Assembly: GCA_977020255.1 (NCBI GenBank)
Contig: CDROCS010000253.1
Location: 3,782,001-3,846,000, forward strand
Origin: Obrimoposthia wandeli
Lineage: Eukaryota
Direction: 5' to 3'
Length of the DNA stretch: 64,000 nucleotides
Made by a program: the position numbers and the translations under genes. Below the pieces are notes generated by a model. That model made no database searches. It was not told the DNA's origin and saw only the letters and a program-made list of their open reading frames with translations. Positions 1 to 58,885 of this stretch are shown here, in pieces (position 1 is the stretch's first letter; each line of letters begins with the position of its first letter).

Positions 1-1553
1 GTATATTCATCACAAAGACCGTGATAACACTTACTAAGAATTGGGTCTAACTTAACGCGTAAATCTGCCGTTGCTTGGTCAGCCGGAATAGAGCCACCTT
101 TTGCATATAACGCAGGAATACCAACGTTAGCAAAAGCGAAATGATCAGAGCGATAGTAAATGCCTGCCGCTGGTCTTGGATCACCCGAAATTATACGGTT
201 TTGTTTGACAGCCGCTTTCGTTAAAAAGTTATCAAGTTCAGATTGCCCTAAACCATATACCGCAACATCTTTACTCTTACCATTAGCATTTAGTGCATCC
301 ATGTTAATGTTAGCAACGGTTTTAGCTGCAGGGATCACTGGATTTGCTGCATAAAACTTAGAACCAAGTAAGCCCTGCTCCTCTGCCGTTACCGCTAAGA
401 ATGTTACTGAACGATCAGGTCGATTCGGTAATTTTGAAAAAGCTTCTGCTACTTCAATCAAAGCTGCCGTACCTGTCGCATTATCACGGGCACCATTATA
501 AATTTGGTCGCCTGTTTTGGTTAAATCTGTACCTAAGTGATCCCAATGCGCTGAGTATAAAATATGCTCGCCCGCTTGTTTTTGACCAGGTAAAGTTGCA
601 ATAAAGTTATATGAAATTGAATTTTTGATAGTATTTTTAACAGTAATAGAGGCATCTAAATTACCCATATCAATATTAAAACTGCCTTGTGCGGCGCGTT
701 CTTTCATTTTATCAAAATCTAGACCTGCTTTTGCAAATAACTCAGCGGCAACAGTACTGTTAACCCAACCTTCCACTGCAACGCGATCTTTATTTAAATC
801 GTCACGTTGAAAACTAAATTGCGGACCAGTCCAAGAATTTTTAACTACCGACCAGCCATATGAAGCCGGTGCAGTTTCATGAATGATAATTGCCCCTTCA
901 GCACCTTGACGGCTCGCTTCTTCATATTTGTAAGTCCAACGACCATAATAGGTCATGGCATTACCATTAAAAACATCAGGGTCTTGTGTAGCGAAACCAG
1001 GGTCATTAACTAAAATAACAACCGTTTTACCCTTAACATCAAGATCTTTATAATCGTTCCAGTTGTATTCTGGCGCATTAACACCGTAACCCACAAAAAC
1101 AAGCTCAGAATTTTTAAGCTGTTCTAATTCACTGATTCGAGCACTACCCATGACCATATCAGTGCCGTGCTGGTAATTTTTACCACCAATGGACAATGTC
1201 ATATCGCTTGACGCTTCAATGGATACTAACGGTACTTCTTGTAAAAAGCTGTCACCATTACCTGGCTTAAAGCCAATAGCAGTAAACTGCTCAGTTAAAT
1301 ATTCAAGAGTTAGTCTTTCACCTTCGCTTGATGGCGCACGACCACCAAATTTATCAGAAGATAATACTTTTACATGGTCAATTAATTGCGCAGTATTAAT
1401 GCTGTCATAGCTAGCACTAATATCTTGGGCGCTATTCCCTTGTAAAGAGTTAACTTGCGAAGCACTAACTTGTGAAGAGTCATCAGATTTTGTGGCAACA
1501 CAACCTACCAATACTGCTGCCGATAAAATCGATAATCCAATTTTTTTTATCAT
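1..1553 (-). CDS. M28 family metallopeptidase lipoprotein (3' end runs off the window)
   Basis: Manual translation from ATG at 1553: MIKKIGLSILSAAVLVGC (lipobox), then AHWDHLG, NGARDNATG, TAEEQGLLGS, NMDALN and YRSDHF zinc-ligand motifs. Absent from the ORF track because it has no stop in the window. Confidence 0.9.
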   Translation of the reverse strand, partial: MIKKIGLSILSAAVLVGCVATKSDDSSQVSASQVNSLQGNSAQDISASYDSINTAQLIDHVKVLSSDKFGGRAPSSEGERLTLEYLTEQFTAIGFKPGNGDSFLQEVPLVSIEASSDMTLSIGGKNYQHGTDMVMGSARISELEQLKNSELVFVGYGVNAPEYNWNDYKDLDVKGKTVVILVNDPGFATQDPDVFNGNAMTYYGRWTYKYEEASRQGAEGAIIIHETAPASYGWSVVKNSWTGPQFSFQRDDLNKDRVAVEGWVNSTVAAELFAKAGLDFDKMKERAAQGSFNIDMGNLDASITVKNTIKNSISYNFIATLPGQKQAGEHILYSAHWDHLGTDLTKTGDQIYNGARDNATGTAALIEVAEAFSKLPNRPDRSVTFLAVTAEEQGLLGSKFYAANPVIPAAKTVANINMDALNANGKSKDVAVYGLGQSELDNFLTKAAVKQNRIISGDPRPAAGIYYRSDHFAFANVGIPALYAKGGSIPADQATADLRVKLDPILSKCYHGLCDEY

Positions 1554-1593
1554 AATTATTATACTTATTCTGTGAAAAAAGATGGTCGGAGTA

Positions 1594-1905
1594 TATACCC
1601 ATTATCATTCAAAGTGCAGGATTTCAGTGGGAATTAAAATGACTTTAAGCAAGGAAAATAATTTAAGCATAGTCATTCTATGGTTTGATTATTTAACGCA
1701 GTATAAAGTGATTTTAAACCCATCAAAGAAGCGCTTGAGCAACATCACTTCATCGTTGCTGTGATTTATAATGACGCTACATGGATGTAGCCTATTAGAG
1801 AATGCAGGTGCATATTCTCCTGAATAACCCTTATTGCATCACAGCGCCTTAAATTGAAATTGCTCAAGTACTCTGAAACATGCATCTTGATTGGTAACGG
1901 GTATA
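1594..1905. repeat. ERIC-like/MITE-like intergenic element (312 bp)
   Basis: Imperfect terminal inverted repeats TATACCCATTATCATTCAAAGTGCAGG and CATGCATCTTGATTGGTAACGGGTATA, with internal hairpins. Same architecture as 19859-20172. Confidence 0.8.
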
Positions 1906-2095: not shown

Positions 2096-2416
2096 ATGAA
2101 AGAATCCTTAAAAGAACTCTCTGAAATAGTCGCCAAAGCCAATGATATATTTTATGACCGTAATAAAAATGTTGATACCCTCATGGGCATCATGGATAAA
2201 ACATTACGTAAGCAAGGCATGAACGCAGATGCAATAACAATAGATTGTATCGCTATCAATAAGAAAATTGTCTTGGTACTTCATGATAGTAAGCCTGATC
2301 GAGTCGACATTGCCCTTGGTGATAAAGCAGGCGTGGTTCACTCGTCAACTGAGCATGAATTAAAAAACGTTAGCATTGCCCAAATACTCGACATGATGGA
2401 AGAGAACTTTCATTAG
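2096..2416 (+). CDS. hypothetical protein (106 aa)
   Basis: ORF track 2009..2416; ATG at 2096 (MKESLKEL...) is the more plausible start. No recognisable motif. Confidence 0.7.
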   Translation: MKESLKELSEIVAKANDIFYDRNKNVDTLMGIMDKTLRKQGMNADAITIDCIAINKKIVLVLHDSKPDRVDIALGDKAGVVHSSTEHELKNVSIAQILDMMEENFH

Positions 2417-2427
2417 AGTTTCGCTGT

Positions 2428-3026
2428 ATGAAAAATAAATTATTGAATGGGCAACACTTATCTCTCGATGATCAAGTTGATTTATTATCTGAGTTCGTAA
2501 TGACACTTGATAGAATGCCAAAAATATTAAGAGAAATCAGTAATCTTCCTAACGCATGGGTTGGTGCAGGAATCATATTTCAAAATGTATGGAACGTAAT
2601 CCATGAATATGAACTTGATACATATATAAAAGATATTGATGTTTTATATTGGGACGAGAATGATTTAAGTTGGGCATCGGAGAATAACTATATTTGCTCA
2701 TTAACTGAATCTTTCTCTGATAGTAGTATCCCAATCGATATAAAAAATATTGCTCGGGTACATTTATGGTATGAGGAGCGCTTTGGTATACCAAAGACTC
2801 AATATCGTAGCATTCAAGAATCAATATCTACATGGCCTGTTATTGGTGCATGTAGGCAATGCGGATGAAAAAAGGGAAATTAGAGTTTATAGCACCATAC
2901 GGCTTCCAAGATATGTTTTCCCTTAGTGTCAGGCCAAATAAAGTATTGGTAAATAAAACTATTTATAAAGCCAAAGCGTTCAAATGGAAAGAACAGTGGC
3001 CGAAACTATCAGTAGAAAACTGGTGA
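2428..3026 (+). pseudogene. nucleotidyltransferase-family (DUF925-like) protein, frameshifted near 2853-2856
   Basis: N-part has WVGAG...VWN and IKDIDVLYWD, and IDIKNIARVHLWY, then stops at 2868. The -1 frame continues AMRMKKGKLEFIAPYGFQDMF...KWKEQWPKLSVENW* to 3026, which fits the expected C-terminus of the family. Confidence 0.75.
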
Positions 3027-3030
3027 TCGT

Positions 3031-3130
3031 TCATAACAAACTGTTAAACAAAGACAAAATACTGTTGGCTTTTGCTTCTCCGTCGCTTATTCTACGCACC
3101 TGAATTTAGCTCATGATTTGGGCGTTAAAC
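3031..3130 (+). other. attC-like recombination site (degenerate)
   Basis: Starts TCATAAC (inverse-core-like) 5 bp after a stop codon and ends GGC-GTTAAAC, a match to GTTRRRY. About 100 bp long; the right arm is shared with three other sites. Confidence 0.6.
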
Positions 3131-3167
3131 TTTTTAAAAATAAACATAACAGTTAAGGATTGTATAT

Positions 3168-4025
3168 ATGTCAGCATTGATTCTAGATGGAAAAAGCGTT
3201 GCTAAAAAGTCTGAAGAAGATTTGCGTTCAAGAGTTGCACGCCTTAAGGAGTTGAGTGACGGCGCCATTCCTATCTTAGCTACAATTTTAGTAGGAAATG
3301 ATCCTTCATCAGCAACCTATGTAAAAATGAAGGCCAATGCTTGTACCCGAGTTGGTATGGATTCATTAAAGGTTGAAATGTCAGAAGACACAACAACAGC
3401 AGAGTTACTGGCTGAAATTGAAAAACTTAATGCCAACCCAAATATTCATGGCATTTTATTACAGCACCCTGTTCCATCACAAATTAATGAAAGACAATGC
3501 TTTGATTCGATAGACTTGTCTAAAGATGTTGATGGGGTAACTTGTTTGGGTTTTGGTCGAATGGCAATGAATGAAAAAGCCTATGGAAGCGCAACGCCAA
3601 AAGGAATTATTCGACTTTTAGAAGCATATAATATTCCGCTAGAAGGTAAACATGCCGTTGTTGTTGGCAGAAGTCCAATCCTTGGTAAACCCATGGCAAT
3701 GATGCTGCTTAATAAAGACTGCACTGTGACTATTTGTCATTCCAAAACAAATGATCTTGATCAAATTATAAAAACTGCAGATATTATTGTCGGCGCTGTA
3801 GGTAAACCAGAATTCATAAAAGCTGATTGGATTAAGGATGGTGCTGTAGTGATAGATGCTGGATATCATGAAGGTGGTGTCGGAGATATTGAATTACAAC
3901 CCCTTGTCAATCGTGTTGAAGCGTATACCCCTGTACCTGGTGGTGTCGGGCCAATGACAATAAACACCTTGATCTATCAAACTGTTGAAGCATGTGAATT
4001 TAAATTAAAAAATAATGAAGACTAA
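3168..4025 (+). CDS. folD: bifunctional methylenetetrahydrofolate dehydrogenase/cyclohydrolase (atypical clade)
   Basis: [57 protein letters not shown] motifs. Confidence 0.95.
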
Positions 4026-4030
4026 TTAAA

Positions 4031-4066
4031 GACTAACAAATTTTTCCTCTAAATGAGGTGTTATGT
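4031..4066 (+). other. internally deleted attC-like remnant
   Basis: GACTAACAAA joined directly to a right arm TTTTCCTCTAAATGAGGTGTTATGT, which resembles the right arm at 8044-8068. Confidence 0.45.
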
Positions 4067-4232
4067 CAGTTTGCTTAAGTTTGTGTTTTTGTTGTACGAA
4101 GTAAAAATAAAGCAAGGTAAGACACTAAATTAAGTGTCTTACCTTGTGATTGAGAGCAACACAGCCTTGGTCTATTTTAGCCAGTACAAGTAGACAATAA
4201 TTGAATTGGTATTAACTTTATAGAGGTAAATA

Positions 4233-4643
4233 ATGCTTTCCAAAGAAAAACTGAGCGAGTTCCTAAAAACTGAATTCCCTCAAACTAAATGTTCTATTGA
4301 CGAAGTAGGAAATCAGAGAGCGACCGTTAGACATCAGGTTGGACAAGATGAATTACGTCCCGGTGGTACCGTCTCAGGTCCAGTAATGATGACTACTGCT
4401 GATGTTGCTTTGTACGTGGCAATTCTTGGTGAGATTGGGCTTGTGCCGCTCGTCGTAACAACCAACTTAACCATTAACTTTCTTCGTAAACCTTCATCTG
4501 AGAAGGATATTATCGGCAAGTGTTCATTGTTAAAAATAGGAAAAACACTGATAGTTGGAAAAGTTGAGTTGTATTCTGATGGCGAAGTAGAACCAGTAGC
4601 CCATGTTATTGGTACTTACTCAGTACCATCAAAAAAAACCTAA
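4233..4643 (+). CDS. PaaI/hotdog-fold thioesterase
   Basis: LRPGGTVSGPVMM..AD, VTTNLTINFLRKP, KIGKTL motifs. Confidence 0.9.
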   Translation: MLSKEKLSEFLKTEFPQTKCSIDEVGNQRATVRHQVGQDELRPGGTVSGPVMMTTADVALYVAILGEIGLVPLVVTTNLTINFLRKPSSEKDIIGKCSLLKIGKTLIVGKVELYSDGEVEPVAHVIGTYSVPSKKT

Positions 4644-4890
4644 CAAACTAAGTCATTTAAAATGATACATAACAATTAGATGTTCTTACCTCGCTATTTT
4701 ATTCGACTCAATTTTACCCATTAGCTAGGGAACTAAATATTCATCGTATTACATAAGCATACGGTGAGTTTAGGTTAACACTTTTAAATCAGTTAATGGG
4801 TAGCTTATTAATTTAACGGCTTGTTGTCTCACTTTGTTCAATAAAATAGCTGCTATTTAATGAACAGGTTTTCTAGTAAGAAACTATTAC

Positions 4891-4915
4891 TTAGCCCATT
4901 ATTTGGGCATTATAT
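4891..4915 (+). other. attC-like right-arm remnant
   Basis: TTAGCCCATTATTTGGGCATTATAT closely matches 3106-3130 (TTAGCTCATGATTTGGGCGTTAAAC) and lies 18 bp before the next ATG. Confidence 0.45.
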
Positions 4916-4933
4916 GAATTAGGAATTTGAGTT

Positions 4934-5209
4934 ATGGAATCCATTTTAGCTTTTTTAATTGTGTTTTATTTAGTTGCTTTTGCTTATGACAAAACAATTG
5001 ATAATGAGATTAAAAGCAACCAACAATTAGCAGATAAGTTAACCGAATTTAAATATTTCCATTCATTTCAATCACGACCTAAAGCGCTTTCTTCCGTGTT
5101 AAGCTTCCAGTTTTTTGGTGTCTCAACTGCTTTAAATATTGTTGGTAGTGTTTTTTCTTTAATGATGTATTTCGGCTTAGGATTTGGTCTATATTTACTC
5201 GCTCAATAG
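4934..5209 (+). CDS. small hypothetical membrane protein
   Basis: 91 aa with hydrophobic N- and C-terminal segments; AGGA RBS at about 4920. Confidence 0.6.
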   Translation: MESILAFLIVFYLVAFAYDKTIDNEIKSNQQLADKLTEFKYFHSFQSRPKALSSVLSFQFFGVSTALNIVGSVFSLMMYFGLGFGLYLLAQ

Positions 5210-5260
5210 CTCTCAACAGCCATGTACCGTAATTATTATGTAAGCTTTTAAAATGGATAA

Positions 5261-5866
5261 TTGATGAACTTTGATATATCAAAATTAGGTGTTCAGGAAA
5301 AGTATCGCCTGTTAAATGGCGGTGTAACCCCACGACCCATTGCTTGGATTAGCACCCGTTCGAAAGATGGTATTGATAACCTTGCACCCTACTCATTCTT
5401 TACTGTTGCAAGCTGTAATCCACCAGTACTGCTCTATACACAAGTGACTCAACGAAGTGGCATTGATAAAGATACCTTACAAAATTTAAGAGAAACAGGT
5501 GAATGTGTGATTAATATTGTTAACACTCATTTATTAGAACAAATGAATGCAACCAGCGCTAGTATTGCCATTGATGCAAGTGAGTTTGAGCTAGCAGAAG
5601 TGAAGCAAAGCACTAGCTATAAAGTAAATCCTTTTTCGGTTACTGACTCACCCATTCGTTACGAATGTACCTTAAGAGAAATTATTTCTATTGGTGATTT
5701 ACCCGCAGGAGGTACGATTGTACTTTTAGATGTGAAATCTGTTTATGTAAGAGATGATCTTTACAGTGATGAAGGTATTAACCAAGCGTTAATTGATTCG
5801 GTTGGTAAAATGGGTGGTGATGGTTATAGCCCTACTTCAAACTATGTTGCTCTTAATCGACCTTAA
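5261..5866 (+). CDS. flavin reductase family protein
   Basis: VTPRPIAWIST, NLAPYSFF, KDTLQNLRETGECVIN, VGKMGG motifs. Confidence 0.9.
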   Translation: MMNFDISKLGVQEKYRLLNGGVTPRPIAWISTRSKDGIDNLAPYSFFTVASCNPPVLLYTQVTQRSGIDKDTLQNLRETGECVINIVNTHLLEQMNATSASIAIDASEFELAEVKQSTSYKVNPFSVTDSPIRYECTLREIISIGDLPAGGTIVLLDVKSVYVRDDLYSDEGINQALIDSVGKMGGDGYSPTSNYVALNRP

Positions 5867-5871
5867 CAAGC

Positions 5872-5900
5872 AAATATCACTCCTTATCTGAGTGATATTT
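5872..5900 (+). terminator. hairpin after flavin reductase gene
   Basis: 11-bp stem AAATATCACTC/GAGTGATATTT, flanked by CCTTAAC (containing the stop codon) and GTTA. Confidence 0.6.
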
Positions 5901-6068
5901 TAGTTATTAAGAATCAGCTGTTTTTGTTAGCCGTCTTCCTATAGAATCCGCCCTATAATTTTTACTTATTAAGATTCTCCAAAACAGAGAAGTCCCAAAT
6001 GGAGAAATCCAAAAGTAAAGTTTAATTAACAACACCTTCTTATCCCTTTCTAAAATGATGCAAAATAA

Positions 6069-6938
6069 ATGAATGATATAACGATAGCGACCCACAACGG
6101 TAATTTTCATGCAGATGATGTTTTCAGTATCGCTGCACTTAAGAATATATTTTCTTCTTTTACACTCGTACGCACCCGTGATTTAGAGATTATCGGCAAG
6201 GCAGATATTGTGATTGATGTAGGTGGTGAATATGATCCCGATACTGGCCGTTTTGATCATCATCAACGTGGTGGTGCCGGTGAGCGCGAAAATGGTATTC
6301 CTTATTCTTCATTTGGTTTAATTTGGCAGAAATATGGCCTTAAAATATGCCAAGGTAACCAAGAAGTAGCCAATAGTGTTGATGCCGGTTTAGTATCAAC
6401 AATTGATGCTATTGACTGTGGTCATGTTGAAGGTGTTGCCCAAGGTATCAGCCTTAGCCAAACTATTTCAATGTTTAACCCAACGTGGCAAGAAGATAGC
6501 CACTTTGATACTTGTTTTGATGAAGCCGTTGATTTTGCATCACGCGTATTAACACGATTCATAGCTTCTGCTAGCGGCGGCATTAATGCTAAAGACATTG
6601 TCGCTAAAGCGATTGATAATGCAGAAGACTCAAGAGTCATAGTGTTAGAAAAGTATACTCCGTGGAAAAGAACAGTTCATGCCTTATCTGAAGAGGCGTT
6701 ATATATGGTTTACCCATCACCTTCTGGCCAATGGCGAATTCAAACCGTACCTGTTGAACCTGGTTCATTCGAAGATAGGAAACCACTACCTAAACAATGG
6801 GCTGGTTTATCTGATGATGCGCTTAAAGAAGTTACTGGTATTGATGATGCAATGTTTTGCCATAATGGTTTATTTATTGCGGGTGCAGCATCATTTGAAA
6901 GCACTATGAAAATGGCATCTATCGCACTTCAAGAATAA
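6069..6938 (+). CDS. MYG1 family protein (DHH-type metal-dependent hydrolase/exonuclease)
   Basis: THNGNFHADDVF, DVGGEYD, FDHHQR, YSSFGLIW, MFCHNGLFIAG motifs. Confidence 0.9.
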   Translation: MNDITIATHNGNFHADDVFSIAALKNIFSSFTLVRTRDLEIIGKADIVIDVGGEYDPDTGRFDHHQRGGAGERENGIPYSSFGLIWQKYGLKICQGNQEVANSVDAGLVSTIDAIDCGHVEGVAQGISLSQTISMFNPTWQEDSHFDTCFDEAVDFASRVLTRFIASASGGINAKDIVAKAIDNAEDSRVIVLEKYTPWKRTVHALSEEALYMVYPSPSGQWRIQTVPVEPGSFEDRKPLPKQWAGLSDDALKEVTGIDDAMFCHNGLFIAGAASFESTMKMASIALQE

Positions 6939-7108
6939 TGACAGTGCTATGTACTCGCTCAACTTAAAATACTCGTTTCATAAAATTTGAGCGAATTATA
7001 ATCAAAGCAGATTTTTTGTTAAGAGTTATAGTTCTACTTCATACGATGTAGAGCTATAACCGATCTTAAAGAAAATTAATCAAGCTGAGCAGTTTCAAGG
7101 TTTAACTG

Positions 7109-7603
7109 TTACAAATCTTTCCATTCTTTCAATTTTACTGGTGCTACAGCTTCCACTTCCGTTGCTGCCACTTCTTCTATTTCAGCTACTCCGTCTAATT
7201 CTTCTAATAAGGCTTCTATTTCAGCTTTTAAGTCTTTATCAGCAATTTTATTACTGTTGATTTTAGCATTTTTTAGATGTTCAATGGCGCTTGATTTATC
7301 ACCTAATTCTACTTGCAATGACGCAATTGCAAAAGCGATTGATGAGAGAAAATCTTTTGAATTAATGGCTTCAGCTTTAGATAATGCTTTCTCGTAGATA
7401 GTAATTGCTAATTCAAGATCGTCAGTAAAGTCAGCAAGCGTTTCCCACTGTACTGGATGGTCTTTATCACTATCGTCATTATCGTCACATACTTTCTTTA
7501 ACTCAGCGTAACATTCATCAAAGCGAATTTGATTTTTTCTATGCACCGCTTGCATTAAGTCTTTAGCTAAAGAGTGCACGTGCTTGTATATTTTTGTATT
7601 CAT
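7109..7603 (-). CDS. tetratricopeptide-repeat-like helical protein
   Basis: A/L-periodic helices (AITIYEKAL, AIEHLKNA) and an acidic tail. Confidence 0.65.
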   Translation of the reverse strand: MNTKIYKHVHSLAKDLMQAVHRKNQIRFDECYAELKKVCDDNDDSDKDHPVQWETLADFTDDLELAITIYEKALSKAEAINSKDFLSSIAFAIASLQVELGDKSSAIEHLKNAKINSNKIADKDLKAEIEALLEELDGVAEIEEVAATEVEAVAPVKLKEWKDL

Positions 7604-7754
7604 GGTTTACCTTACTTTATATTTTTCATAAAAATCTTACGGGGATTATAACGTAAAACTAAACAGGCTGTTTGATCAAAATATTGAATCACAGTGAAAA
7701 CTTGGTTAGTGTCGTTGAAACAAACAAACTAAAACCTTCAGATAGAGGCATTGT

Positions 7755-7967
7755 ATGAGCAATATAATTATAGAATCAATTATTACTTGTCCTGAATGCG
7801 GCTGTAATAAAAAAGAAGTTATGCCTACCGATGCATGTCAGTATTTTTATAAATGCAGCTCATGTCACGCTGTCATTAAACCACTCGCTGGTGATTGTTG
7901 TGTTTATTGCTCATTTGGCACCGTTAAATGCCCTTCCATTCAAGAAAAAAAGGCGTGTGGTAATTAA
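7755..7967 (+). CDS. GDCCVxC-domain small cysteine-rich protein
   Basis: ITCPECG...MPTDACQYFYKCSSC...KPLAGDCCVYCSFGTVKCP. Confidence 0.85.
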   Translation: MSNIIIESIITCPECGCNKKEVMPTDACQYFYKCSSCHAVIKPLAGDCCVYCSFGTVKCPSIQEKKACGN

Positions 7968-7970
7968 TTG

Positions 7971-8068
7971 GTATAAAATGCCACTAAACAGAAACAAAAC
8001 AGATGGCTAGGTTCTTTTCATATGTACTTTAGCCGCCATTATTTTAGCCTCTTAATGAGGTTTTATAT
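7971..8068 (+). other. attC-like site (both cores mutated)
   Basis: Left arm ...AAACAGAAACAAAACAGATGGCT resembles 3045-3070; right arm TTAGCCTCTTAATGAGGTTTTATAT. Lies directly between two + strand ORFs. Confidence 0.5.
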
Positions 8069-8086
8069 TTCTTCTGGATACCTATT

Positions 8087-8371
8087 ATGAATTTAGATAA
8101 ATCAACAAAACGTATAGCAAAGAGAGTCAAAAAAGGATTTCAGGGTTACCCTCAAATTTCACTGGCTTATTTTGGTGAATCAGTTAACTGCGCAACCCAA
8201 GTAGTTGTCGCTTTTATCCAAGAAGAAGGCGCAGCGCCCCAAGAACAAACATTCTCCAGTAAAGACGATGCGAGAAAAGACGAAACGATTCAAACGACCT
8301 TATTAAAAATTATCGAGCGAGCAGATGCAAAAACAGTGTTAGAAATTGCCGGCATTGAAATTATTAAATAA
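8087..8371 (+). CDS. hypothetical protein (94 aa)
   Basis: Clean ORF with a basic N-terminus (KRIAKRVKKGFQGYP); function not recognised. Confidence 0.7.
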   Translation: MNLDKSTKRIAKRVKKGFQGYPQISLAYFGESVNCATQVVVAFIQEEGAAPQEQTFSSKDDARKDETIQTTLLKIIERADAKTVLEIAGIEIIK

Positions 8372-8381
8372 AAGTCGCGGA

Positions 8382-8470
8382 ATATAACATAACTGGACAA
8401 TGCGGGCTTTAACTGTTGGTAAACTCCGTCTATTCGCTTTTAACCAGCAATTATTTATTCCCTTATTTTA
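8382..8470 (+). other. attC-like remnant
   Basis: ATATAAC start, CTGTTGG and AACCAGCA paired arms, and a TTATTCCCTTATTT right-arm fragment. Confidence 0.35.
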
Positions 8471-8485
8471 AGCACGGAGAGTTAG

Positions 8486-8818
8486 GTGAAGAATTTACTT
8501 AAAAGTATTCAGTATGACATGTTAGATTTTATTGAAGGTGAGGATGAAGCTGATTATACCTCAGAGGACGTCAAGCTTTGTATCACACATCTGCTAGAAT
8601 TTATGTCGTCTATGGCGTCTGAAGCACAAACAACAGATAGCGCTATAGACCATGTGAAAGCATTAGTTTTGTCTCTAAACGCGTTAAATGATGAGTGTAA
8701 TGACAGTTTAATAGAAACAGATCAACGCGAAGATATTTGTGAGTTCATTCAAAAAGTAATCTCTGCTGCAAACATAACGTTTGTCGGGGATATCACAGAA
8801 GAATGGAGAGAGTGGTAA
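8486..8818 (+). CDS. acidic hypothetical protein (110 aa)
   Basis: GGAG RBS and GTG start; helical and acidic, ends DITEEWREW. Confidence 0.7.
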   Translation: MKNLLKSIQYDMLDFIEGEDEADYTSEDVKLCITHLLEFMSSMASEAQTTDSAIDHVKALVLSLNALNDECNDSLIETDQREDICEFIQKVISAANITFVGDITEEWREW

Positions 8819-17700: not shown

Positions 17701-18819
17701 AATATCATTATCGCTTTTATCCCCTAAACCGTCGCTATCAGTGTCTTTTTGCTCACTAGCAAGAAAAGGAAAAGCATCATTGGTGTTTAGTACTCCATCA
17801 CCATCAATATCAGGATCACTATTATCGCCTAAACCATCCGTATCTAAATCAAGATGTTCTGTGCTATCTAATGGAAAAATATCGATGCTGTCTTGAACAC
17901 CATCACCGTCATCATCATCGTCAGCATTGTTACCTATGCCGTCATTATCGGTATCTAGCGTTTCTAATGGGTCGAGTGGCATATCATCGTCAACATCAAG
18001 AACGCCATCACCTACACCAGTCACATCATGTGTATCATCATCAGTATCAGTATTGTTACCGATACCATCACCATCGGTGTCAAACCACTCAGTATTATCG
18101 TAAGGAAAAACGTCAAGGGTATTTACAATGCCATCATTATCAATATCAGGGTCTTGCGCATTACCCATGCCATCACCATCGAGATCGGCATTAACATTAA
18201 AGTCTAATGGAAAGGCATCATCACCATCGTTTACACCATCACCATCATCATCTATATCAGCATTGTTACCAATACCATCTAAGTCAGTATCTATTGTTTC
18301 AAGGGGGTCAAGAGGGAATTGATCGTAAACATCAAGAACACTGTCATTATCATCATCAGGATCGTCATTATTACCTATGCCATCAAGATCAGAATCCAAG
18401 CTTTCTTGCCTGTTGAGTGGGAATACATCAAGTAAATCAGGTACACCGTCGTTATCATCATCGGTGTCAGTATTGTTACCTATATTGTCATTATCGGTAT
18501 CAAGCCATTCACTGGGATCTTTTGGCAGGGGATCATGTATATTGATAGCTAAGTCGCCATCATCGTTATTATCATCACCAAAAGGAAAACTATAACCATT
18601 ATCAAGACCATCACCGTCAATATCAGGATCGGAATTATTGCCAACACCGTCAAGATCGGTGTCAATCCATTCAAGTGGATCAGTAGGGAATAAATCGATG
18701 GCATCATCATAGCCATCACCGTCTGTATCTACGGCAAAAGCACTGGTACTAATGACCAGTGTAAGTATGCTTAAAAATTTAAAGGTACGTATTTTATACT
18801 TCAACACACGTTTCTCCAC
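14731..18819 (-). CDS. large secreted thrombospondin type-3 (DxDxDG) repeat protein with Ig/Calx-beta-like domains and a GlyGly-CTERM-like tail
   Basis: Signal peptide ending AFA; dozens of DxDxDG...DAFPxDxxE repeats over about 800 aa; beta-rich domains; EDGGANDADGIANGVIDDPGG; C-terminus SSSGS followed by a hydrophobic helix and RLPRTK. Confidence 0.85.
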   Translation of the reverse strand: MEKRVLKYKIRTFKFLSILTLVISTSAFAVDTDGDGYDDAIDLFPTDPLEWIDTDLDGVGNNSDPDIDGDGLDNGYSFPFGDDNNDDGDLAINIHDPLPKDPSEWLDTDNDNIGNNTDTDDDNDGVPDLLDVFPLNRQESLDSDLDGIGNNDDPDDDNDSVLDVYDQFPLDPLETIDTDLDGIGNNADIDDDGDGVNDGDDAFPLDFNVNADLDGDGMGNAQDPDIDNDGIVNTLDVFPYDNTEWFDTDGDGIGNNTDTDDDTHDVTGVGDGVLDVDDDMPLDPLETLDTDNDGIGNNADDDDDGDGVQDSIDIFPLDSTEHLDLDTDGLGDNSDPDIDGDGVLNTNDAFPFLASEQKDTDSDGLGDKSDNDIDGDGVTNGPFTSGNYTDPSDTVFTGNDAFPFTAAEYIDTDGDGLGNTFADSDDDGDGEPDVSDVFPLDFSEQKDLDGDGVGDRGDTDIDGDTITNGLFSSGNYSDLSDPVYSGNDAFPFQMLATTDTDGDGIPNVTDLNDDGDVEPDATDAFPLDPTEWLDTDSDGLGNRFADSDDDNDGILDGGDAFPLISAEWLDTDGDEIGNNSDLDDDGDGVLDGDDRYPLNANEQFDSDGDGVGDNADSDDDNDGFSDAIDAFDTDPLEWFDTDRDGTGNNADTDDDGDGRSDSIDLFPLDKTEWLDADNDGLGDNSDSDDDNDGVRDIEDAFPNNPVEAFDTDGDGLGNVFDSDDDDDGVLDFEDQLPLDAKEHLDTDGDLVGNNADLDDDGDGMSDEFEVLYNFDPLNDEDGLYDTDSDGVSNVAEALAGSHPLRDDYAPIITPPQSVHIYADHTFTRLDLQRLIDLTSITVRDGLDGKNCCGLTALGFETGAKNVSSGLIPILWRAVDNAGNLAEVKQVLNIHPLVNFSSAQIVAEGGIAQVEVVLSGEAPAYPVTLPLTITGTVDNADYTISDNKIVIAQGTSGFIDINVNNDFQVEGDEQLILSFKQGVNAGVHAKHLITITEGNVAPTISLAIWQKGVQVPSVASNDGAVTVVLSIKDSNVQDTHQIDWQIPDYLNAVLSTDKLQLVFPVDGLNLPEENKSLINLSVTVTDSGNTTNSGTEELSQTKQVYLALLATQRTLRGLDSDRDGMSDLVEGFSDEDSDGLPAYMDNSTIPYLQPLHINAALVKLAETEPGLRLKLGKFALLQSSDGIALTQQEILATGLVEQDSLTNTMGYFDFEIHNIAPFGRSVAIVLPLSAAIVEYSVYRKVNAEQQWADFAEDSNNVIATSKAVNGVCPPPHSELYQAGLNVGDTCLKLFIEDGGANDADGIANGVIDDPGGIAVVDNNTISLEVTPEKSSSGSFSFFVLFALVVLSVVRLPRTKYLTE

Positions 18820-19858: not shown

Positions 19859-20172
19859 GATACCCGTTCCACTTGAAGATACAGGATTCAGCTGGCATTA
19901 GAAACGCCTTTAGGCAAGGCATTGATTGAAGAGCATAGTTATTCTATTGTCGAAATCAATAACGCAGCATAAAGCGTTTCTAAACCAGCCTCTTGTGGAA
20001 GGCTGAGCAAATCATACTCTGCGTTACCTTTATTTTTAAGGACGCTACATGGATGGTGTTCTTAGTGAATGCAGGAGCACATTTTCCTGAATGACCCTTA
20101 ATAAAAAAATGTGCCTTGATTATGAATCGCTCAGACTTCCTGAAATGAGCATATTCAAGTGGAGTGGGTATA
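19859..20172. repeat. ERIC-like/MITE-like intergenic element (314 bp)
   Basis: Ends GATACCCGTTCCACTTGAAGAT and ATATTCAAGTGGAGTGGGTATA; internal layout is collinear with 1594-1905. Confidence 0.8.
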
Positions 20173-32867: not shown

Positions 32868-32916
32868 GACGTGACATGGATGTTACTTATTAGACAATGC
32901 AGGATGCATATTGTCC
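32868..32916. repeat. two-hairpin CATGGATG/AATGCAGG motif (third copy)
   Basis: GACGTGACATGGATGTTACTTATTAGACAATGCAGGATGCATATTGTCC aligns with 1773-1820 and 20041-20087. Confidence 0.7.
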
Positions 32917-33093
32917 TGGGTTCATATCAGTTAAGAGCATGGTTTCTTAATTGATAAAACTAATCATTCACCTTTAAACTGAAGTGTTCAAGTTAAAGAA
33001 AAAAGCACGTAGTTGACGTTAGTCAATGAGTACTTTTGACGTATAAATTGGACGCTACAGTAACAAGGTGAGTGGTTAGTAACTATTAAATAC

Positions 33094-35466: not shown

Positions 35467-35760
35467 TGCTAATACAAACTTTATGAAAAATTAATATCCA
35501 TATAATGCCATAAATAGATATATTTTCTATATAAGAAACGCATTCAATATAACTAAAAGTAATATAGTGGTTCAAGGTAATGCTGTTATTGGGGTATCAA
35601 AGCTTGGTTTAGCTGAAAGGTTAGCGCCGAAAAAATAAGTGCTTACGATATCCGTGACCAATTAAAGTACTGAATTTTTGTCGGGATTAAAATTACTTTA
35701 GACAAGGAAAATAAGTTCAATCTGGTTATTCTATGCTTTGATTATTTAACGCCTATAAAC

Positions 35761-58249: not shown

Positions 58250-58885
58250 CTATATCATTGATTTTAACGCATTGCGAATAATGTCTTCGCTAGACATTCC
58301 GGGATTATATACGGATTTAACCGCTTTATCTGCTTGTACTTGTTTATAGCCAAGTGATAGTAAGGCATTAATGGCATCACCCTTATTATCACTAATAAAG
58401 GTGCTATCTAGACTCAGTTCTGCAGAAAGTTGTTCTGGTATTACGCCGTCATTACTGACTAAGTGTATTTGTTGTGCTTGCCAGTCTTTTAAACGATCTC
58501 GCATTTCTATAAGTAAACGCTCTGCTGTTTTTTTACCAACACCGGGAATTTTTACAATAGCGGTAATATCATCGTGGCGAACACAACTAACAAATTGATC
58601 AGCAGACATATTTGATAAAATGGCTAATGCTAATTTGGGACCTACACCATTAACTTTTATCAATAATCGGAATAACTTACGCTCAACTTTATTGGCAAAG
58701 CCATAAAGCAATTGTGCATCTTCACGTACGACAAAGTGAGTATATATTGTCGCCTGTTGCTCAAGCTCAGGTAAGGCATAAATGCTAGTCATTGGCATAG
58801 TGACTTCATAACCTACGCCAGCGCATTCAATTAATATTTCAGGAGAAAGTTTTTCAACAAGCGTGCCACGTAAACGTCCAATCAC
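58250..58885 (-). CDS. ruvA: Holliday junction DNA-binding protein
   Basis: [41 protein letters not shown] at 58885 is preferred. Confidence 0.96.

Follow-up and report, generated by a model that had tools for sequence, protein, structure and literature searches.

The stretch from 2096 to 8818 of the window (the whole 64,000-nucleotide piece of DNA analysed here) is very probably an integron-type cassette array without a nearby integrase, that is, a cluster of attC sites that has no integron integrase (CALIN), in graded decay at a fixed place upstream of the ole cluster in Colwellia. An integron unit consists of a promoterless open reading frame (ORF) and an attC site, and such units are inserted or excised when the integrase cuts the folded strand of attC at G|TT. 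The attC site carries an R'' box (RYYYAAC) and an R' box (GTTRRRY), forms an imperfect hairpin with a bulged L box and a variable terminal stem-loop, and measures 57-141 nt. The closest relatives of the window are Colwellia genomes (gene F protein identity up to 89%), and its GC content is low, about 35-40%. Between the M28 peptidase gene on the left (1-1601, minus strand) and the thioesterase/oleD/oleC genes on the right (minus strand, 8955 onward) lie ten plus-strand reading frames and one minus-strand gene, lettered A to K below. The first-pass annotation had described a row of small plus-strand ORFs with a TPR gene as the exception, and we found that this gene (H) is alone on the minus strand. 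The same annotation proposed an integrase-less array and named three findings that would speak against it: no covariance-model matches, no intact repeat in a related genome and an invariant gene order. We found model matches, intact repeats in relatives and variable gene order instead.

The shared spacer motifs are the right arms of attC sites

Four 25-nt motifs, at 3106, 4042, 4891 and 8044, had been noticed as a common right arm. All four are present at exactly these coordinates, on the plus strand and in spacers. A pattern consisting of the positions identical between the sites at 4891 and 8044 was run against both strands of the 64 kb with up to three mismatches; it gave five matches against 0.40 expected, and none of 100 shuffles reached five. 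The fifth match, at 58286, was poor (three mismatches) and was the sole match in the other 57 kb.

A profile for nhmmer was made solely from the elements of relatives, and the window was never included. It matched the window at 3031-3131 (E = 7.8e-11), 7963-8068 (E = 1.1e-3), 4877-4916 (E = 4.7e-3) and 4636-4729 (E = 0.33). We also built a covariance model, R1, from 22 aligned attC-like sites of relatives, none of them from the window, and ran it unfiltered over the whole window. The structure of R1, with three helices (R box, L box and central stem), was written by hand and tested by pair counts: the helices were 62% paired in the family alignment versus 29-44% when the partners were slid, and 23 of the 26 pairs changed on both sides. 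The five best window matches of R1 were all on the plus strand and in or adjoining the spacers of this stretch, and the best score outside them was 14.4 bits (E = 1.5). The five sites, and one spacer that resembles a site, were as follows.

3032-3130, plus strand: attC of cassette B, near-intact; R1 45.5 bits, E = 2e-7 in the window
4031-4066, plus strand: attC of the folD cassette, internally deleted; R'' GACTAAC, right arm ending in GTTATGT
4650-4734, plus strand: probable eroded attC after D, weak; R1 18.6 bits, E = 0.18 for the window and 0.021 for the region
4859-4915, plus strand: attC relic upstream of E; R1 24.9 bits, E = 0.0075, 41 central positions missing
7972-8068, plus strand: attC of cassette I, full length, core mutated; R1 33.7 bits, E = 8e-5
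8382-8470, plus strand: spacer after J; R1 9.6 bits, E = 2.1, not significant

As a positive control, R1, which had been trained on Colwellia and Shewanella sites, gave 50.1 and 38.4 bits on two untrained sites of Vibrio breoganii (L025; relatives' loci are given by such L numbers). These two sites lie just downstream of a divergent integron integrase gene (NCBIfam TIGR02249, 379.8 bits, cutoff 265). Intact copies of the repeat were present in the arrays of relatives, and in 692 kb of relatives' loci 37/37 matches of R1 fell on the gene strand. A dispersed repeat of the repetitive extragenic palindrome type or the miniature inverted-repeat transposable element (MITE) type was considered and rejected: R1 had no match above noise elsewhere in the 64 kb, and its matches in relatives kept to the gene strand. 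From the R1 and nhmmer matches, the paired helices and the control sites beside the Vibrio integrase we conclude that the element family is attC and that the window motifs are its right arms. The left arms at 3045-3070 and 7986-8008, whose resemblance was noted earlier, both align to positions 14-40 of the attC model.

The TAAC left ends fared less well. All five, at 3031, 4031, 4638, 5861 and 8382, are present as written, and those at 3031, 4031 and 4638 belong to model-supported sites; those at 5861 and 8382 do not, and they are not significant. A TAAC within 20 nt of a stop codon was found for 5/9 ORFs in the region versus 10/42 elsewhere in the window (Fisher p = 0.07). Taken by themselves, the TAAC ends barely exceed background and are weak evidence.

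This frequency of TAAC near stops outside the region would fit chance similarity among AT-rich spacers, as would our own estimate that 6.7 kb should contain about two pairs of 25-mers with 80% identity. Set against this, the motif pattern exceeded its expectation of 0.40 in a way that no shuffle reproduced, and models blind to the window gave E-values of 2e-7 (R1) and 8e-11 (nhmmer). We consider that chance has next to no probability as the source of these elements.

The right arm of this attC family contains its own hairpin of 4-5 bp (GCCn...nGGC or CCTC...GAGG), which to our knowledge lies outside the usual description of attC. In alignment A2 (columns 84-87 with 95-98) it was paired in 82% of cells and covarying. 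Examples in the window are at 4895-4909 and 8047-8061. The hairpin competes with L-box pairing.

The sites are in different states of decay

The first-pass annotation had distinguished near-intact, internally deleted and core-mutated sites, and comparison with orthologues bore out all three grades. Site 3032-3130 (99 nt) is near-intact. It has R'' TCATAAC at 3031-3037 and R' GTTAAAC at 3124-3130; the latter fits GTTRRRY, the former keeps TAAC, and TAAC and GTTA pair. It retains 20/26 pairs and shares about 87% identity, along its entire length, with its orthologue at L084:7865-7963 (58.3 bits). No other window site has a fitting inverse core site.

The folD site was matched by R1 at 4003-4066 (21.3 bits, E = 0.046 for the window and 0.005 for the region) with 34 central model positions missing. 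Its orthologues are full length, about 95 nt (L084 8866-8960, L088 6866-6960), and in the alignment both ends are kept and about 60 nt are lost relative to L084, L088 and L090. Because the orthologous sites are full length, the internal deletion at 4031-4066 is proven. Downstream of D, the R'' box ACCTAAC (4638-4644) overlaps the stop codon. In the relic before E the right arm is kept (4877-4915), a deletion has removed the centre and the mutated core reads ATTATAT. This right arm is orthologous to L001:9506-9552 in C. demingiae, where the site upstream of E is split by half a MITE copy (L001:9365-9505).

The site of cassette I (97 nt) keeps about 20/26 pairs, and TTT stands in place of GTT at 8062-8064. 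Its orthologues score 26-41.5 bits in L001, L010, L009, L004 and L006, and they read ATT except in L004, which has GTT. Thus the GTT triplet is retained at 3124 and 4060 and has become ATT at 4909 and TTT at 8062; because they have lost it, the elements at 4909 and 8062 are relics rather than sites. We infer, as the annotation had, that loss of GTT fixed the genes in place. The spacer after J (8382-8470) resembles the good attC of J in L011 and may be the last trace of J's own site.

Among seven I-site orthologues, conservation of the left arm (0.66) and loop (0.60) was similar to that of third codon positions (0.65), and the right arm (0.78) and leader (0.83) were more conserved. The higher conservation of the right arm may explain why the first-pass annotation picked out right arms. 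It would also be expected if the motifs served gene expression in the ordinary way, for instance as short terminator hairpins or as parts of promoters and leaders, and were attC-like by convergence; in the same direction, a terminator scan lists 8046-8062 as terminator-like, and the motifs end 18-20 nt before the E and J start codons. Convergence does not explain why 3032-3130 and 7972-8068 are homologous to the site family over their full length, left arm and central stem included, or why the short forms derive from full-length sites by deletion, as the orthologue comparison revealed. Moreover, the other 57 kb gave only the one poor motif match and no R1 score above 14.4 bits, and promoter-like sites numbered 29 versus 30.5 in shuffles. 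An origin of the motif as a promoter was examined separately and rejected: TTAGCC as -35 and TATAT as -10 leave a 14-nt spacer, and there is no excess of promoter-like sites. We therefore regard convergence as very improbable and reject it. An attC origin does not preclude a regulatory role today, and the surviving right-arm hairpins may have been kept by selection as expression signals of the fixed genes.

No integrase was found near the array

IntI1 was used as a tblastn query (E <= 1). It matched the Vibrio integrase (42% identity over 315 residues) and, in Shewanella, a fragment resembling IntI; the 64-kb window and Colwellia loci L001-L023, L082 and L084-L090 gave no match, although a badly eroded integrase pseudogene could escape this search. 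In relatives the search covered up to 10 kb on each side of the arrays. The array is not a complete integron: its head consists of the M28 peptidase gene (minus strand), a MITE-like insertion and gene A, with no integrase. The absence of an integrase claimed by the first-pass annotation therefore holds over the sequence covered.

Shewanella sp. OPT22 has a truncated IntI-like or Xer-like recombinase gene of 244 aa (L047:2195-3053), which reaches only 80 bits with TIGR02249 and is flanked on one side by an attC-F unit and on the other by a cassette whose attC scores 72.9 bits.

Gene content varies among relatives and homology breaks at G|TT

The genes of the stretch, and one hairpin between them, are listed below.

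A, 2096-2416, plus strand: 106 aa; first gene past the M28 peptidase
B, 2428-2868 plus 2859-3026 (whole 2428-3026), plus strand: NTP_transf_6 nucleotidyltransferase split by a frameshift
C (folD), 3168-4025, plus strand: methylene-tetrahydrofolate dehydrogenase/cyclohydrolase; Pfam PF00763 and PF02882
D, 4233-4643, plus strand: 4HBT thioesterase; Pfam PF03061
E, 4934-5209, plus strand: small membrane protein
F, 5261-5866, plus strand: flavin reductase; Pfam PF01613
Hairpin after F, 5872-5900, plus strand: perfect and terminator-like (terminator scan); then GTTATTA at 5903-5909, where the G unit begins
G, 6069-6938, plus strand: MYG1/UPF0160; Pfam match
H, 7109-7603, minus strand (the only such gene): TPR; Pfam match
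I, 7755-7967, plus strand: small GDCCVxC-domain protein; NCBIfam NF041374, 97.5 bits
J, 8087-8371, plus strand: no assigned family
K, 8486-8818, plus strand: no assigned family

Relatives were obtained by a genome scan with protein F, which gave 80 loci. The order E-F-H-J is common to seven Colwellia loci (L001, L002, L004, L006, L009, L010 and the window), with about 76-88% nucleotide identity over this block. L006 and L009 have the order M28-A-E-F-H-J-thioesterase(L)-oleD and are without B, C, D, G, I and K. In L010, 5 kb lie between F and H, and in L001 (C. demingiae) E-F-G-H-I-J-K stand behind other genes. L017 has F-H-J, with E not detected there; G and K are absent from L006, L009 and L017. 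H was found in seven relatives. The gene content between the M28 peptidase and oleD, which the annotation had proposed to compare, is thus not invariant among Colwellia. Its description of a fossil array fits the distal E-F-H-J part, which is frozen in the seven loci, and does not fit the A-E part, which differs between species and is no old fossil.

L006 and L009 carry an eroded gene I and L004 and L002 have lost most of it by deletion, and the site behind it remains. Because the attC stays while the gene erodes, the decay of I is vertical, ordinary decay and not excision by an integrase. Gene I is a member of the GDCCVxC-domain (seleno)protein family and is under loss in several sister species.

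Other arrays carry the same genes in other company. L011 (Colwelliaceae BS250) has F, J and a homologue of A in another order among about 30 co-oriented small ORFs, and its spacers share an element of 90-100 nt ending in ...GGGCGTTA, with 15 or more sites; the J of this array carries its own 51.9-bit attC. The homologue of A (58% identity) lies within the array at 18627. In the window no attC follows A, and the gap between A and B is only 11 nt. Gene A had no Pfam or NCBIfam family above threshold. A homologue of D (66-67%) directly follows F in L027 and L028, an order that differs from that of the window, and F stands directly behind a 72.9-bit attC in Shewanella L047. In C. demingiae at least 9 good sites lie directly upstream of E-F-G-H-I-J-K, with genes of the kind usually carried by cassettes (GNAT acetyltransferases, lipocalin, zf-CDGSH and several DUFs), and the head of that array consists of YaeQ, an M28 paralogue, GNAT and DUF885. 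This C. demingiae M28 peptidase was rejected as an orthologue of the window's: it is a 34% paralogue, and the left flank there differs. The F gene of Vibrio was likewise set aside as proof of a cassette, as it lies 4.3 kb from the V. breoganii integrase with no detectable attC on either side.

Three junctions place the breakpoints of homology. Upstream of E, homology with L006 and L009 starts exactly at A|TTATA, and before it the window and L001 differ from these two loci. At the F/G junction the window, L001, L002 and L004 have unrelated filler past the stop codon of F and become homologous again at GTTAT. The folD leader is common to five Colwellia copies from GTTA on, and three different sequences precede it. 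The homology breakpoints coincide with the G|TT crossover point. The terminator-like hairpin after F had no attC model match on the plus strand.

Gene B is read in two frames, with PF06042 profile positions 7-99 and 109-159 in different frames and the frameshift near an A-run at 2859-2868; its orthologues in L084, L088 and L090 are intact (199-202 aa). B is either cassette cargo that has turned into a pseudogene or else bears a sequencing error at the A-run. No RNA sequencing run was found to contain the stretch, and contigs of four runs agree with the window sequence, with 0 differences in run X1 over the B frameshift region; run X1 is probably the source sample of the assembly, so its agreement leaves a sequencing error in B possible.

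Several other elements lie outside this gene and site inventory. A MITE-like insertion of 305 bp with terminal inverted repeats of about 30 nt occupies window positions 1596-1900, between the M28 peptidase gene and A. It is absent from L003, L006, L008, L009 and L010, and weaker copies are at 19882-20100, 35664-35759 and 32868-32918 of the window. A non-coding element at 4075-4214 holds a 14-bp GC-containing hairpin (4113-4146) with a T-run on the minus strand. Similar sequences (about 70%) are found at L006:12506-12654 and L009:6309-6458, there between J and the minus-strand thioesterase gene. The window element could be a minus-strand terminator or a small RNA inside the D unit. A tRNA scan and an Rfam scan of the 64-kb window returned nothing.

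The B-folD block recurs in a second array

A second long co-oriented array, found in C. demingiae, C. psychrerythraea ND2E and a metagenome-assembled genome, has B and folD as neighbours. The order there is UDG, B, folD, a 139-aa ORF, ACT, OsmC, LysE, PhzF and more, with an attC after each. The window has this pair at the array locus upstream of the ole cluster, and the leader of B and the site preceding it are deleted. Colwellia sp. 75C3 has folD by itself, preceded by an attC right arm. Thus folD with the same 5' untranslated region, starting at the GTTA of R', occurs in three contexts in Colwellia: this array, the second array and alone. The C. psychrerythraea ND2E locus (L091, JQED01000056.1, last 17.6 kb) has at least 28 co-oriented small genes running to the contig end. 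An intI gene was sought at the head of the second large array, and none was seen in C. psychrerythraea, where the contig ends inside the array.

Comparison of the window gene (3168-4025) with L084, L086, L088 and L090 gave folD identities of 88-93% among Colwellia, and identities to the non-cassette folD of other gammaproteobacteria were 78-80%. Those homologues in other genera are in ordinary core contexts with unrelated flanks. These identities, the constant start at an attC GTTA with one and the same leader, and the three different locations speak for the idea, which we hold to be rather improbable, that the array gene is the core folD of Colwellia itself, possibly the sole copy, in the form of an integron cassette.

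Fixed or still mobile

One alternative, which we think unlikely, is that the array is not a fossil, and that an integrase elsewhere still moves cassettes through the GTT-bearing sites (3032-3130 and perhaps 4031-4066). It would then be a working secondary array whose decay is only a partial loss. Site 3032-3130, with its R' GTTAAAC, scores like its orthologues in three other arrays (45.5 versus 43.4-58.3 bits); the A-E interval differs between close species and B-folD occurs in another Colwellia array; and cassettes of CALINs may be mobilised in trans (Cury et al. 2016, PMC4889954). On the other hand, no integrase was found in the Colwellia sequence examined, and the upstream end of the B-folD block cannot be recombined, given that the A/B junction is without a site and B has lost its 5' leader. 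The frameshift in B and the frozen distal order in seven Colwellia loci likewise speak for a fixed array.

Several observations weigh against reading the stretch as a decaying, integrase-less array. R1 is a self-made model with rough E-values, and it was this model rather than IntegronFinder's own attC model that was applied. RNAalifold found no consensus structure in two MAFFT alignments of relatives' sites. The bottom-strand folding that the first-pass annotation had suggested went against it, as the window copies were no more stable than shuffles (z = -0.19 for 3028-3133); folding by minimum free energy was discarded as a test for such AT-rich sites, most of which, the window's included, gave folds that did not surpass those of shuffles. 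At six junctions no site could be detected, and E, G, H and K can therefore be called cassettes by position only. In several Colwellia (L005, L012, L013 and L014) F also has conserved surroundings that are not an array. Finally, 64 kb of this genome were covered, so an integrase could lie elsewhere in it.

On balance we favour a CALIN in decay. Under this interpretation each unit would once have been a promoterless ORF with an attC, moved by an integron integrase at G|TT. The sites are now at different stages of loss, with one intact-like, one without GTT, two without the central stem and one a faint remnant, and no site is left at the remaining junctions. The array would have been built by an integrase and the mutated sites would no longer recombine, hence the frozen order. 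The distal E-F-(G)-H-(I)-J-(K) part has very probably been inherited vertically since before the split of these Colwellia species, with deletions and point decay of the ordinary kind as the only changes in its genes today. The proximal A-E part was probably remodelled later; here it holds the two-cassette B-folD block, which other Colwellia also carry in the second large array.

Comparison with known integron arrays

The category, abundance and likely origins of CALINs were described by Cury et al. 2016 (PMC4889954), and we consider that the array is an instance of this known category and not a new system. Like those CALINs, the window has at least two attC sites less than 4 kb apart on one strand (3032, 4031, 4650, 4859 and 7972, all plus strand, largest gap 3.06 kb), no intI or intI pseudogene detected nearby, and cargo unrelated to antibiotic resistance. 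Unlike them, it combines several decay states in one array, and most of its sites are probably below the calling level of standard searches; probably only two of the five would pass a strict threshold. A further difference is that orthologous arrays in seven Colwellia loci let decay be followed site by site.

The sites are also like the Vibrio cholerae repeat (VCR)-type attC of the sedentary chromosomal integrons of Vibrio and Shewanella, in their length (about 90-100 nt), their TAAC...GTTA ends and the presence of a central stem and an L-box-like helix, and the Vibrio sites beside IntI are recognised by R1. As in those sedentary arrays, the ORFs are small and co-oriented and mostly without known function. 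The window differs in showing no integrase, attI or Pc; the site family is much less uniform than VCRs (mean column identity 59%), and its right arm, unlike that of VCR-type sites, has its own covarying 4-bp hairpin.

Xanthomonas integrons with an inactivated intI, and CALINs at conserved loci, have been reported (Gillings 2005, cited and extended in Microb Genom 2025, PMC12444791). The Colwellia array resembles them in its conserved chromosomal position and in a gene content that stays constant inside a lineage and varies from one lineage to another, a pattern expected once integrase activity is lost. The dead intI of Xanthomonas can usually still be seen next to ilvD (PMC12444791), whereas no intI remnant was found here.

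We found no description of integrons in Colwellia in the literature that we searched, and the present array documents integron-type arrays in this cold-marine genus. It is also a warning that arrays of this kind will be under-counted by standard attC searches. The seven loci provide a site-by-site comparative view of cassettes losing their mobility and becoming ordinary chromosomal genes, in which left arms and loops drift neutrally, central stems are deleted and GTT is mutated, and in which folD, F and J stay while B rots, as does I in relatives. The folD cassette is a lead on the unsolved question of cassette origin: if folD is indeed a packaged core gene, it would represent recent cassette genesis from a housekeeping gene, with an essential function placed on a mobile unit.

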